64,000 nt of DNA from Lama guanicoe (taxonomy: Eukaryota), in assembly GCA_013239625.1 (NCBI GenBank), contig MU057332.1, forward strand, positions 8,397,001 through 8,461,000, in the 5' to 3' direction. Below, piece after piece: positions 9,601 to 36,800 of this stretch (position 1 is the stretch's first letter; each line of letters begins with the position of its first letter). The position numbers and the translations under genes were made by a program. The notes below the pieces were generated by a model. The model was not told the origin of the DNA. It saw only the letters and a list, made by a program, of their open reading frames with translations, and did no database searches.

Positions 9601-12600
9601 TTCTTCTAATGGCTGTTTGCTGTGTGTTAGTATCTGTGTTCCTGCATTGTAGGTACTCTACATCTGCCTGTTGATTAACCCAGAATGGTCCCCGGGCTCC
9701 TGGACCTCTGAGCCCTTATTCCCTCTGCCTCCAGAGCTCACCCCTCAGATCTTCAACCACTATATGGTCCTCCAGCTCCGAAATCTGGGAGGCCATTCCC
9801 AGCAGCAGCTGAGTCACTGCCTGGGCATCGTTCAGATTGGGGTTCTGGAAATAAGCAACATATTCAAGGTAGGTTCTCAGGCCCCTCCCCCAAATCCAGT
9901 GCCTCTCACCCAGGACCACTGTAGTACCTCAGGACAAAGGGCCCCTGGCCAGTCCTAGACTCTCCTGAGTTTTTGTCCCCAGATAATTTTCTGATCACTC
10001 TACCCTTCATCTCCCACCACCTGGAGCAGCAACAATCCAAAACTGGAATTGTTGCTTTTCCTACCCTGTGTGACAAGACTGAATTTGACCACCTTCCCTG
10101 CCCCTGAGCCCAGGCTGACCTCTCGAATCCAGTAGCTATTGCAGACTCTGAGAGCTTGGGAGCTGCCAAAACCCTTGTTCTGGACCATCTGGAAATGACA
10201 GCTGGCGTTTCTGAAGAGGGGAATCAAGGATGCAGTAAGAGAATTCAAGGAAGAAGCTGAGATGCGATTGAGTTGAGTGAGGGACTTAGAGATTTGGCCA
10301 GTACAGAGGAGTGGCCCCTGAATGTCCCTGAACATGGCAGGGATTTGCCAATGTGTGAGGACTGAAGGTAGAGGTTGCTCTTTGTCCACACAGGGGAGGA
10401 AGGAGAGGAGGGAGGAGAGTGACCCAGCTGCTGGACAAATCCTGCTGTAATCAACTGAAGTTCAGGCATTAAGAGGAACTGGAGGGATTTCCCTGTTAAG
10501 ACCGAACCTCCTACCCCAGGGTTCTGTTTCAGGGCACCAAATTCTGCTTCTCTCCCCCCATGAAACTGTGGGAGTGTATAAAAGCCCCCAGGCTCCCAAG
10601 GCTGCTGATTCTTCACCTCTGCCTGTGCGCTGCAGCCAGACCCTCCCTCACCTCATGTAGACACCAGGGGGCACCATGGTGGAAAAGAACTGCTCAGAGG
10701 CTGCCAGGAACTCCGGGGAGATGCTGGGGTCCAGGAAAGGGCGGTATCCTGGGAGGAGAGGAGAAGACAGGATTACTAAAATTTAGCGCTTAAGCCCGGC
10801 CCCCACAACACCTCCAGAAAAGCTCCTGCAAGCTCTCCATTCTCCCTCCCCATCCCCTCACCTGTGTATGCTGGGGGTGTTTGCTGCAGGAAGCTGGGCA
10901 GCCACTCATACATGGCGATGTTCTGAAAGTCAAGACAGGGGAAAGGGGAGGCCAGCGCTGGAGCTGCTGGCCTGGAGGGACCTGAGCCCAAGAAAGGCTT
11001 AGGTGGGAGATGAGGACCAGGCAGGAGCAGACCTGGGAGAGGCAACTCAAACAGGAGCGGTGCGGAGGTTCCTGTTCCCAACAAGGAACCAGGGGATGGA
11101 GAGAGCAGGCAGCTAAATAATAATCACTAGAAAAATCTCTCGCACAAGTAGCGCTTTTCCTCCTCCTCATTTTCAGGGGCTTTCTTAGACGGTAGCTGCC
11201 TGGGGAGGGCTCTTTCTGAGTGGGGGTTGTCCAGGGATGGAGGGCTCTGCCGAGGGAGCGGAGTCTGTCGGGGACAGGGACGTGGTGGTGGGGTGCGGGT
11301 GGGGGAGGGCCGAGCAACTGACCTGGTAGGTGGCGATGACCCTCTTGCGCGCGTGCTGGAACAGCTCCTCGTCCCCCCACAGCGGGTGCTGGCGGGCCAG
11401 CTCCTGCGCCCACAGGTTGTGGTAGCGGAACCAGAGCAGGCCCAGCGCCTGCAGGAAGGGCTCGCGGTTCCCTCGCTCCGCCCCGAAGGCTGCACGCGCC
11501 GCGGGGACGCAGAGGAGGAGAGGAGCGCACGTGTGACCCAGGGGCGCGCAACCTCGCCCATCCCCGGCCCGCGGCCCCCCACCCCCGGCCCCCGGGGCCT
11601 CACCGTACAGCCCCCGGGGCCCGCGCTGTCCCGTGGCGGGGTCGGGCGGCGTCCACATGAGCAGCGGGTCCTGCGCGTCCCGGGGGAAGGCGGGGTCGGG
11701 CCCCGACGCCAGCCGCCCCCCGGAGAAGCTCCGCAGCTCGTCGCTCCAGGAGTGCGAGGAGCCATAGATGGCGCTGCCGTCCAGCCAGCCCGTCACCTCG
11801 TTGGTCTGCGGGGACAGCGGGAGGCCGAGCCGGGGGTCGGGACGCCGAGGCGGCTCAGGGAGGGCGAGGGCCGGCCGGGTGTCCGCGGGCGGGGGCGGGG
11901 GTGGGAGCCTCTCCCCAGCTGCCTCGGGCCCAGCCCCCCGCCCCGCTCACCAGGTCCCGGGGGTTGCTGGGGCTCTGTCCGGTCTCGGGGTCCCAGCGGC
12001 TCCTCTGGAAGGGCAGCACGACGTCCCCGCGCTGGTCTGGGTCGAACACGGGGTCTCCGGGCGGGATGTGGATGTTGAGGAACTCGGCTGGGCAGCCAGG
12101 CTTTTCCACGCTCACCAGGTCCGAGAGCACGTGGTAGCCTGCGGGCGTGGGGTGCAAACTGGTGAGAATCGCTACACCCCACGGCAGGGGCTGACGCCAA
12201 TTCCTTAAGAGCCTAAAGGCAGATATTCCAGTGCAAGCTCCGCCACCAGCTCTAAAGCTCTTTCTTAACCTGCAAGGCGGTGTTATAATACCCTCCTTAC
12301 CTACCTCATAACGTCGTTGGGAGGATCAGAATTATGCAATTAATGTAAAGGCTCCCCCAATTCAGTCCCCATCTCCTAACAGATCCTGCCTCTCCCTTCC
12401 TCTTCGCGAAGAGGTTATAATCATATCTGGAGGAAAGCAGTGACTGGGGACTCAGGCCCCTCAGAGCTATAATGGGAGTTTGTGGGACTCCTGGGTTTGG
12501 AGTAAAGGGTAGGAGAAAGATTAGGAGAGCAAATATCCCTGAATCAACGCCCTCAAATTCCTCCAAGATGAAGAAAGGCTTGAAGTGCTGCTTGGTGGAG

Positions 12601-33800: not shown

Positions 33801-36800
33801 ACCTGCTTCCCAGTGTCTAAAGTCCCACTGAGGCTGGCAGGCCCATGCTCCCAGCAGCATGTTGGAGCCAGTGCTGCCAGCCCTATGGCCTAGGCACACT
33901 CACTGGGCACCTCCCAGTTACCAAGGAGAAGGCCAGACTGACAATGAAAACAGTTTGTACCAAGGATTGGAAAGGGGTGGGGAGGTCAAGGCTTAGACTT
34001 GCCCATAATGGCAGTTGAGTCTTCTGCAGCTTTAACGGAGCCGGTGTGGGAAGCGCTAAATACCTGGCTCATGGCCCTCAGCTGGCCCTACCATGCCCTG
34101 CCCCTCGTGAGCAGGCTACCACGTGCTCTCGGACCTGGTGAGCGTGGAAAAGCCTGGCTGCCCAGCCGAGTTCCTCAACATCCACATCCCGCCCGGAGAC
34201 CCCGTGTTCGACCCAGACCAGCGCGGGGACGTCGTGCTGCCCTTCCAGAGGAGCCGCTGGGACCCCGAGACCGGACAGAGCCCCAGCAACCCCCGGGACC
34301 TGGTGAGCGGGGCGGGGGGCTGGGCCCGAGGCAGCTGGGGAGAGGCTCCCACCCCCGCCCCCGCCCGCGGACACCCGGCCGGCCCTCGCCCTCCCTGAGC
34401 CGCCTCGGCGTCCCGACCCCCGGCTCGGCCTCCCGCTGTCCCCGCAGACCAACGAGGTGACGGGCTGGCTGGACGGCAGCGCCATCTATGGCTCCTCGCA
34501 CTCCTGGAGCGACGAGCTGCGGAGCTTCTCCGGGGGGCGGCTGGCGTCGGGGCCCGACCCCGCCTTCCCCCGGGACGCGCAGGACCCGCTGCTCATGTGG
34601 ACGCCGCCCGACCCCGCCACGGGACAGCGCGGGCCCCGGGGGCTGTACGGTGAGGCCCCGGGGGCCGGGGGTGGGGGGCCGCGGGCCGGGGATGGGCGAG
34701 GTTGCGCGCCCCTGGGTCACACGTGCGCTCCTCTCCTCCTCTGCGTCCCCGCGGCGCGTGCAGCCTTCGGGGCGGAGCGAGGGAACCGCGAGCCCTTCCT
34801 GCAGGCGCTGGGCCTGCTCTGGTTCCGCTACCACAACCTGTGGGCGCAGGAGCTGGCCCGCCAGCACCCGCTGTGGGGGGACGAGGAGCTGTTCCAGCAC
34901 GCGCGCAAGAGGGTCATCGCCACCTACCAGGTCAGTTGCTCGGCCCTCCCCCACCCGCACCCCACCACCACGTCCCTGTCCCCGACAGACTCCGCTCCCT
35001 CGGCAGAGCCCTCCATCCCTGGACAACCCCCACTCAGAAAGAGCCCTCCCCAGGCAGCTACCGTCTAAGAAAGCCCCTGAAAATGAGGAGGAGGAAAAGC
35101 GCTACTTGTGCGAGAGATTTTTCTAGTGATTATTATTTAGCTGCCTGCTCTCTCCATCCCCTGGTTCCTTGTTGGGAACAGGAACCTCCGCACCGCTCCT
35201 GTTTGAGTTGCCTCTCCCAGGTCTGCTCCTGCCTGGTCCTCATCTCCCACCTAAGCCTTTCTTGGGCTCAGGTCCCTCCAGGCCAGCAGCTCCAGCGCTG
35301 GCCTCCCCTTTCCCCTGTCTTGACTTTCAGAACATCGCCATGTATGAGTGGCTGCCCAGCTTCCTGCAGCAAACACCCCCAGCATACACAGGTGAGGGGA
35401 TGGGGAGGGAGAATGGAGAGCTTGCAGGAGCTTTTCTGGAGGTGTTGTGGGGGCCGGGCTTAAGCGCTAAATTTTAGTAATCCTGTCTTCTCCTCTCCTC
35501 CCAGGATACCGCCCTTTCCTGGACCCCAGCATCTCCCCGGAGTTCCTGGCAGCCTCTGAGCAGTTCTTTTCCACCATGGTGCCCCCTGGTGTCTACATGA
35601 GGTGAGGGAGGGGGCTCAGATTTTGTGTGTTTGGAGGGGTGGAGGTGTGAATTGAGAAAAATCTGCCCTCAGGGAGCCCTCAAATCAGGCTCTTCAGTTT
35701 CCCCCAGAAAACAGTGAATATGGAGGAGAAGGACAACAATTGTTTAAAAAGATGCATCATTGTTGGTTTTAAGCCCTTTTATGTCTGTTTCCCTGCAGCT
35801 AGTGTAAATATTAATCCCCCAATTAAAGACAAGCTAATTGAGGCTCAGAGGGTGAGTCACAGAGCCCACAGGTCTAAACCTCAGGTGTTGACGCTACACT
35901 GGGGGCTTTATATCTATAAGCACAGGACATGGGGCTTCTAAGTCTTTGGAGAGAATTACGATAAAAATGTGTGAGAGTTGAAAAATATTGGCTCCAAAAT
36001 AGTGAAAAAGAGACTTTTAAAATATATATATTAAATTGAAAGTATATAAAACAAAGCATATCAGCCTTTTTTTTCAATTACATTATAATTTAAAACAATT
36101 CATAGGTTAGATTTTTTTGTTCTGCAACAATTTCTGGACATGGCTGATGAGGGCCAAGAAATCATAGTAATTGAGTTATTCATAGACAACTTTAAAAGAA
36201 CAATGAATAATTCTTTATATACATACATATATGGAGAGAGAGTGAGAGAGGGAGGATGAACTGTTGCAAAATATGGGATACATTTTTAGATGTCTGGTCT
36301 GATGTGGGGAGAGGGACCTTCCAAAAATGAGATTGTTTAAGACCTACCCCGATCACACACCACCTCAAGGAAGCAGTAGCCTGGGCGCTTGGCTATAGCC
36401 TCGGAGACCAGATTTGATGCCTGCCTTTAGGACTTCATAGCTTNNNNNNNNNNNNNNNNNNNNNNNNNNNNNNNNNNNNNNNNNNNNNNNNNNNNNNNNN
36501 NNNNNNNNNNNNNNNNNNNNNNNNNNNNNNNNNNNNNNNNNNNNNNNNNNNNNNNNNNNNNNNNNNNNNNNNNNNTGGGGCGCATATGTGAAGAGGGGTG
36601 TGGGTGGGTATGTGCGTCTGAAGCTGTGTGGTGAAGGTGGGCAGTAGGGCTGAGGCAGCCAGCTGGGATGGGCTAGGGTGGAGGAGGCAGCCTGGGGCAC
36701 CCCAGCCGGCTCCCCTACCAACGTTTGGGATGACCAGGTAGTCCTCCACCCCCACCTCAGGGCTGTGTGAAGCACAGTGGGGCCTGTGCAGGTGTGGCTC

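Follow-up and report, generated by a model that had tools for sequence, protein, structure and literature searches.

Interlocus gene conversion between old paralogs is familiar from textbook cases such as the fetal globin genes, CYP21A2/CYP21A1P and the opsins. DUOX1 and DUOX2 are old neighbouring genes whose products make hydrogen peroxide for the thyroid and the airways. Here we describe the DUOX locus of the guanaco (Lama guanicoe) in a 64,000-nucleotide (nt) stretch of DNA, hereafter the window (assembly GCA_013239625.1, contig MU057332.1, positions 8,397,001 to 8,461,000 of the forward strand), in which a block of 1.5 kb shared by DUOX1 and DUOX2 is identical to the letter in the assembly. 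The locus resembles the textbook cases in its sharp tracts that include introns, its diverged flanks, its GC-rich core and the grouping of its paralogs by species. Unlike those cases, the DUOX paralogs are inverted and lie head-to-head with two genes between them, both copies are functional genes, and the same exons appear to have been homogenised independently in at least four mammalian orders.

The closest described system is the same gene pair in human. According to one study (Dumont 2015, PMC4467073), three high-confidence parallelisms between the human DUOX1 and DUOX2 duplicons span exons 4-7, and the pair is named there as an example of rampant interlocus conversion. The guanaco locus matches the human one in gene pair, in the part of the gene and in process, with exons 4-7 affected there and the predicted 4th to 8th coding exons here; it differs in the kind of data, the human work being built on shared polymorphisms in people, whereas a single assembly here carries a fixed-looking, perfect tract of 1502 nt together with three shorter ones. 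A literature search found no report of DUOX1/DUOX2 conversion in mammals other than human, only the human polymorphism data. The process is thus already known for human DUOX1/DUOX2 at these exons, and the guanaco is a further instance of it.

A block of 1502 nt is identical between DUOX1 and DUOX2 in the assembly

In the assembly, positions 10641-12142 are the exact reverse complement of positions 34111-35612, with 0 mismatches and 0 gaps over 1502 nt in both a base-by-base ungapped comparison and blastn. This block, which we call T1 (Table 1), is the longest exact run between the two genes, and an inverted-repeat scan of the whole window gave as its dominant pair 10641-12152 / 34101-35612, 1512 nt at a rounded 100%. 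At both edges of T1 the match rate in the ungapped comparison, judged by eye, drops at once to about the level of unrelated sequence. By the splice sites, the identity starts 4 nt before the first of five exons and stops 11 nt after the last, and the introns on either side have no blastn match to each other at E<=1e-4. The initial annotation of this DNA had described just such a perfect inverted identity free of indels, with these limits and with dissimilar flanking introns, and these points hold.

Within T1, the five exons are separated by four introns of 145, 114, 400 and 113 nt, so that 772 nt of intron are identical between the copies. Stop-free frames of T1 match human and mouse DUOX1 in the PDB (7d3e, 6wxr) and the Pfam family An_peroxidase. 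Residues 103-341 of chimpanzee DUOX1 map to T1, and because that gene has three coding exons upstream, the T1 exons are predicted to be the 4th to 8th coding exons; the initial annotation had numbered them 5-9.

To judge the size of this excess of identity, the remainder of the two genes provides the yardstick. Outside T1 and the three shorter tracts described below, 625 codons have 68.5% nucleotide identity, with about 1.0 synonymous substitutions per synonymous site (dS) and 0.29 nonsynonymous substitutions per nonsynonymous site (dN); across the 374 codons of the exons inside the four tracts, dS is 0.011. Introns outside the tracts share no similarity that blastn detects at E<=1e-4, save the intron after T2, one of the shorter tracts. 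Outside the tracts, then, the paralogs are old. We also applied a GENECONV-type run-length test, in which the match/mismatch vectors of 19 paralogous exon blocks were concatenated (2434 sites, 312 differences) and shuffled 10000 times. The longest identical run among the concatenated exon sites is 732; none of the 10000 shuffles reached it, and their maximum was 104.

Gene conversion as the probable cause of the identity

Because the silent sites and four whole introns of T1 are identical while their neighbours have diverged (dS ~1 in the neighbouring exons, flanking introns that cannot be aligned), we read T1 as an interlocus, or non-allelic, gene-conversion tract between DUOX1 and DUOX2, with a probability of roughly 0.85. 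This is the mechanism that the initial annotation had proposed. A break in one DUOX gene would have been repaired with the inverted paralog 22 kb away as the template; the five exons would have provided the homology that anchored the repair, and the short introns lying between would have been carried over with them.

Strong purifying selection on the peroxidase-like domain could in principle hold the two genes together with no transfer of DNA, and the segment is indeed conserved in protein across mammals, at 82-95% between species. However, selection on the protein is ruled out as the cause of the identity because the copies also agree at every synonymous site and throughout the 772 nt of intron, and the segment groups by lineage and not by gene. 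We consider this explanation refuted and give it virtually no chance.

A recent inverted segmental duplication, or a crossover between the inverted arms that inverted the 22-kb spacer, is also very improbable. The arms are inverted, lie 22 kb apart and are long enough for non-allelic homologous recombination. Nevertheless, there is no extra copy, the exon-intron structure is in register in both genes, and the exons that flank the tract are of DUOX1 type on the right and of DUOX2 type on the left, as usual. Moreover, the DUOXA exon closer to the right gene is the slightly more DUOXA1-like of the two (141.5 versus 135.4 bits), and a crossover alone swaps flanks without erasing differences. Neither the gene order nor the flank type of the window gives any indication of a flipped spacer.

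In the tract the paralogs group by lineage, and outside it by gene

Interlocus conversion that recurs in separate lineages should leave its mark in other mammals, and the initial annotation had named one such pattern, a clustering of the paralogs by species within the tract and by gene elsewhere, as a way to check its proposal. Homologs were reached stepwise, from an unspliced frame of 253 amino acids (aa) to a match of 441 aa and from that to a match of 739 aa, without joining exons; the search was limited to proteins of 0.55-1.75 times the query length and gave 71 proteins. For the trees we took 19 of the 71, of which 4 are from non-mammals and 15 are from mammals and extend over the tract or its 3' neighbours. 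We excluded fish, human rows, near-duplicates and any row in which the region is missing, and from each tree also one tamarin fragment with few or no columns there.

In the tract tree (18 rows, 237 columns) the proteins group by order, with support of 97/99 for rodents, 96/91 for cetartiodactyls and 66/70 for primates. Its four DUOX2 rows require three changes, and no bootstrap replicate (0%) makes them monophyletic: the DUOX2 of tamarin, of blue whale and of two voles/lemmings each joins the DUOX1 of its own order. In the tree built outside the tract (18 rows, the next 374 columns without the T2 exon), the same four DUOX2 rows form one clade with support of 100/100. An approximately unbiased (AU) test on the tract columns rejected DUOX2 monophyly, with a log-likelihood (lnL) difference of 120.5 and p 1.8e-5. 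Pairwise identities follow the same division, since paralogs within an order share 90-94.5% of their protein sequence in the tract and 54-63% outside it, and orthologs compared across orders share 81-87% in the tract and 78-88% outside it. The expected grouping is thus seen in public proteins, which also support the recurrent, lineage-specific nature of the conversion; to judge by these trees, homogenisation of the same exons took place separately in several mammalian orders. T1 lies at what appears to be a conversion hotspot active across mammals.

The tamarin gives the closest view of one such case. The downstream exons of model P0013 identify it as DUOX2, and P0029 is DUOX1. Inside the tract the two loci are identical to each other at 226/234 positions, and 209-211 of 234-235 positions are identical to the window. 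Both models read through two introns, and the translations of those introns are the same at the two loci. Outside the tract, across 234 columns, the window and the tamarin divide by gene at 31 sites, by species at 3 and in the third way at 0. A four-taxon site count gave 9:1:0 with a doubtfully labelled tamarin fragment; redone with the verified DUOX2 row, it gave just 3:0:2, so the trees, and not this count, carry the argument.

These tamarin models are not the only public ones with defects of this kind: P0001, P0013 and P0029 (tamarin), P0007 (alpaca) and P0010 (Bactrian camel) all show intron read-through or a frame shift in the DUOX region. Automatic annotation is unreliable where the DUOX paralogs have been homogenised.

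How recent and how exact the identity is

Several points weigh against gene conversion as we describe it, or against its perfection. On the comparative side, the cross-species test uses proteins only, and many of the models are partial or mis-predicted. The group submitted to the AU test was named after the tract tree was known, though it was also the test that the initial annotation had set out beforehand. There is doubt about one label, as the tamarin fragment P0001, labelled DUOX2, is probably the 5' part of DUOX1. In other mammals the paralogs are 90-97% identical in the tract at the protein level and not 100%, which makes the camelid value the extreme. Nor can a donor gene be named, because the comparison species have been homogenised as well; the tract is similarly identical to the DUOX1 of human, mouse, whale and dingo and to the DUOX2 of tamarin and whale. 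On the side of the data themselves, the exact identity is that of the assembly sequence. The window holds three runs of N (5157-5325, 36444-36575 and 55919-56053; 169, 132 and 135 nt), one of which directly adjoins T3, the third of our four tracts. In addition, a public alpaca DUOX1 model (P0067) lacks exactly the regions of T1 and T2 (hippo DUOX1 residues 119-333 and 472-522), and these gaps probably mark sequence that could not be resolved in an earlier assembly or annotation. The N run at T3 and the gaps of the alpaca model both suit a locus that is hard to assemble, in which some true differences may have gone missing.

The last of these points raise the possibility that the perfection is a product of assembly. 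The real copies would then be near-identical, as the 90-97% of other mammals might lead one to expect, and a collapsed or gap-filled consensus would have been placed at both loci, making the perfection and the recent date artefactual and leaving an older conversion still beneath. In its letter-identical loci, its nearby N runs and a relative's public model that lacks the same regions, the guanaco locus does look like a collapsed repeat. In contrast, the assembly retains two paralog differences within ~30 nt of the T2 start and five at the T4 end, which indicates that nearby differences were resolved, and ordinary read pairs can bridge the three other exact tracts, of 92-262 nt. Collapse is also unable to create the sharp edges of T1 or homology in four introns, or to make paralogs group by lineage in other mammals that were assembled independently; such an artefact merely sharpens a near-identity that already exists. 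Of 24 listed sequencing runs, kept as contigs, 18 (nine studies) hold at least 96% of 411 words sampled from the window, a count that does not tell the two copies apart. Overall, we regard an assembly origin of the perfect identity as unlikely, though it is the alternative to be taken most seriously. It is similarly unlikely that some true differences within T1 were lost in assembly, which would push the date back and leave the mechanism unchanged.

This bears directly on the age of the T1 event. At mutation rates of 1-2.2e-9 substitutions per site per year, the absence of any difference over 1502 nt puts the 95% upper limit on the age at ~0.45-1.0 Myr, if the assembly is exact. On that condition the event would be very recent in the guanaco genome. 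The initial annotation had called the conversion recent; the absence of any difference agrees with this if the assembly is taken at its word, and it is less likely that the assembler polished a near-identity to perfection.

Further tracts indicate a mosaic of conversion events

Pairwise alignment of all paralogous exons, together with a search for exact runs, gave three further tracts (T2 to T4, Table 1). The exact run of T2 is preceded by two paralog-specific mismatches just upstream, and beyond its end the remainder of the intron can be aligned at lower identity; the exon that follows is 74% identical. The length of T3 is a lower bound, as the comparison ends at the N run in the left copy. 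In the exon that contains T4, the last ~22 nt hold 5 mismatches between the paralogs. Because three shorter exact tracts occur alongside stretches of intermediate identity, the locus appears to be a mosaic of conversion events of different ages.

The extent of the tracts also differs between lineages, for the exon after T2 (39580-39699 / 8178-8059) is only 74% identical between the window paralogs yet has 37/40 residues in common between the tamarin paralogs. Separately, two exon pairs, 49488-49709 / 1143-928 and 41978-42091 / 6933-6820, have dS values of 0.28 and 0.55, compared with ~1.0 elsewhere, at 87-90% nucleotide identity; both may be what is left of older conversion tracts that have since decayed.

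The positions of the tract ends are informative about the process. The initial annotation held that exon edges set the limits of conversion. This describes T1 well, but it is not general: T2 ends ~115 nt into an intron, T4 ends within an exon, and in the tamarin the two loci still differ in the opening codons of the first tract exon. We infer instead that tracts stop where usable homology stops. The ends of T1 coincide with the ends of alignable sequence, as a homology-dependent process would predict.

Table 1. Tracts and neighbouring features of the guanaco DUOX locus (positions counted from the first letter of the window)
Feature	Position	Strand	Remarks
T1, DUOX2 copy	10641-12142	-	exons 12138-11951, 11805-11604, 11489-11323, 10922-10862, 10748-10652, mirrored from the + copy
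T1, DUOX1 copy	34111-35612	+	exons 34115-34302, 34448-34649, 34764-34930, 35331-35391, 35505-35601, from splice sites
T2, DUOX1 copy	39232-39493	+	262 nt exact; most of one exon and ~115 nt of the next intron
T2, DUOX2 copy	8281-8542	-	pairs with 39232-39493
T3, DUOX1 copy	44995-45086	+	at least 92 nt exact; includes 17 nt of intron and continues into an exon
T3, DUOX2 copy	5326-5417	-	pairs with 44995-45086; adjoins N run 5157-5325
T4, DUOX1 copy	45858-46017	+	160 nt exact; from 6 nt before the exon to a point within it
T4, DUOX2 copy	3157-3316	-	pairs with 45858-46017
Exon before tract, right gene	33195-33356	+	98 bits to human DUOX1
Exon before tract, left gene	12729-12890	-	71 bits to human DUOX1
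Spacer between inverted arms	12143-34110	.	21,968 nt; 5' exons of both DUOX genes, DUOXA2 (+) and DUOXA1 (-)
DUOXA2 exon	16610-16882	+	135.4 bits to human DUOXA1
DUOXA1 exon	20687-20923	-	141.5 bits to human DUOXA1

Base composition of the tract

The composition of T1 sets it apart from its surroundings. Its GC content is 67.6%, compared with 39-56% in four flanking intron segments, and its first two introns reach 81-83% GC with an observed/expected ratio of CpG (CpG o/e) of 0.73-0.82, compared with 0.09-0.37 in the flanking intron segments. GC content at third codon positions (GC3) is 0.88 in the tract exons versus 0.73 outside. This pattern is consistent with long-term GC-biased conversion centred on the first three T1 exons, a process that would have made the first half of the tract as GC-rich as it is, although the relationship is a correlation only and a gene-body CpG island would look alike.

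A possible hotspot, and consequences of the identity

Taken jointly, these observations permit a broader and more doubtful reading, in which the core of the peroxidase-like domain is a conversion hotspot that already existed before primates, rodents, cetartiodactyls and camelids split and has stayed at work on the same exons in all of them. The ectodomains of the two oxidases would then never have been free to diverge, the persistence of the hotspot might be selected, and the arms would be able to flip the 22-kb cassette between them. Under this reading, selection for persistence might come, for example, from an extracellular partner common to the two oxidases or from the need of both to fit their maturation factors, and persistence need not be a mere by-product of local recombination. 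If the reading is true, a flip of the cassette, which includes the two promoters, the two DUOXA genes and the first exons, would swap the regulatory 5' ends between the oxidases.

The identity has practical consequences as well. A guanaco read that falls in the five T1 exons could come from either DUOX1 or DUOX2, which makes variant calls and expression counts there ambiguous. Gene models, too, can drop these exons, as apparently happened in the alpaca DUOX1 model. DUOX2 is known as a gene involved in disorders of thyroid hormone synthesis, and conversion can carry variants between DUOX1 and DUOX2. Furthermore, with perfect inverted repeats at a distance of 22 kb, the promoter region that the genes share could become inverted.

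Layout of the locus and identity of the genes

The locus has the usual arrangement, head-to-head DUOX2 / DUOXA2 / DUOXA1 / DUOX1. Similarity to named proteins identifies the right gene as DUOX1 and the left as DUOX2: right-gene exons outside the tracts are 97-100% identical to the alpaca DUOX1 protein (P0067), and left-gene exons near the tract have 80-90% identity to the named DUOX2 of tamarin or blue whale and 45-69% to DUOX1 proteins. Against human DUOX1, an exon far beyond the tract scores 103 bits on the right gene and 40 bits on the left, and the exons just before the tract differ in the same direction (Table 1). There are also matches of 100% to alpaca DUOX fragments and of 98-100% to a Bactrian camel fragment.

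Between the oxidases, exons of the maturation-factor genes DUOXA2 and DUOXA1 (16654-16886, +, and 20683-20915, -) form an inverted pair of their own with merely 81% identity. These two genes show no recent conversion.

Two smaller features concern the DUOX genes themselves. Just past T1 the left gene has a 31-codon exon at 10120-10212 (-) that is 81% identical to tamarin DUOX2; a right-gene counterpart is not visible in 35613-37535 (+), a stretch that holds the N run 36444-36575. In the right gene, GC instead of GT seems, by eye, to follow the exon end at 49709-49712 (+), possibly marking a GC-AG intron.

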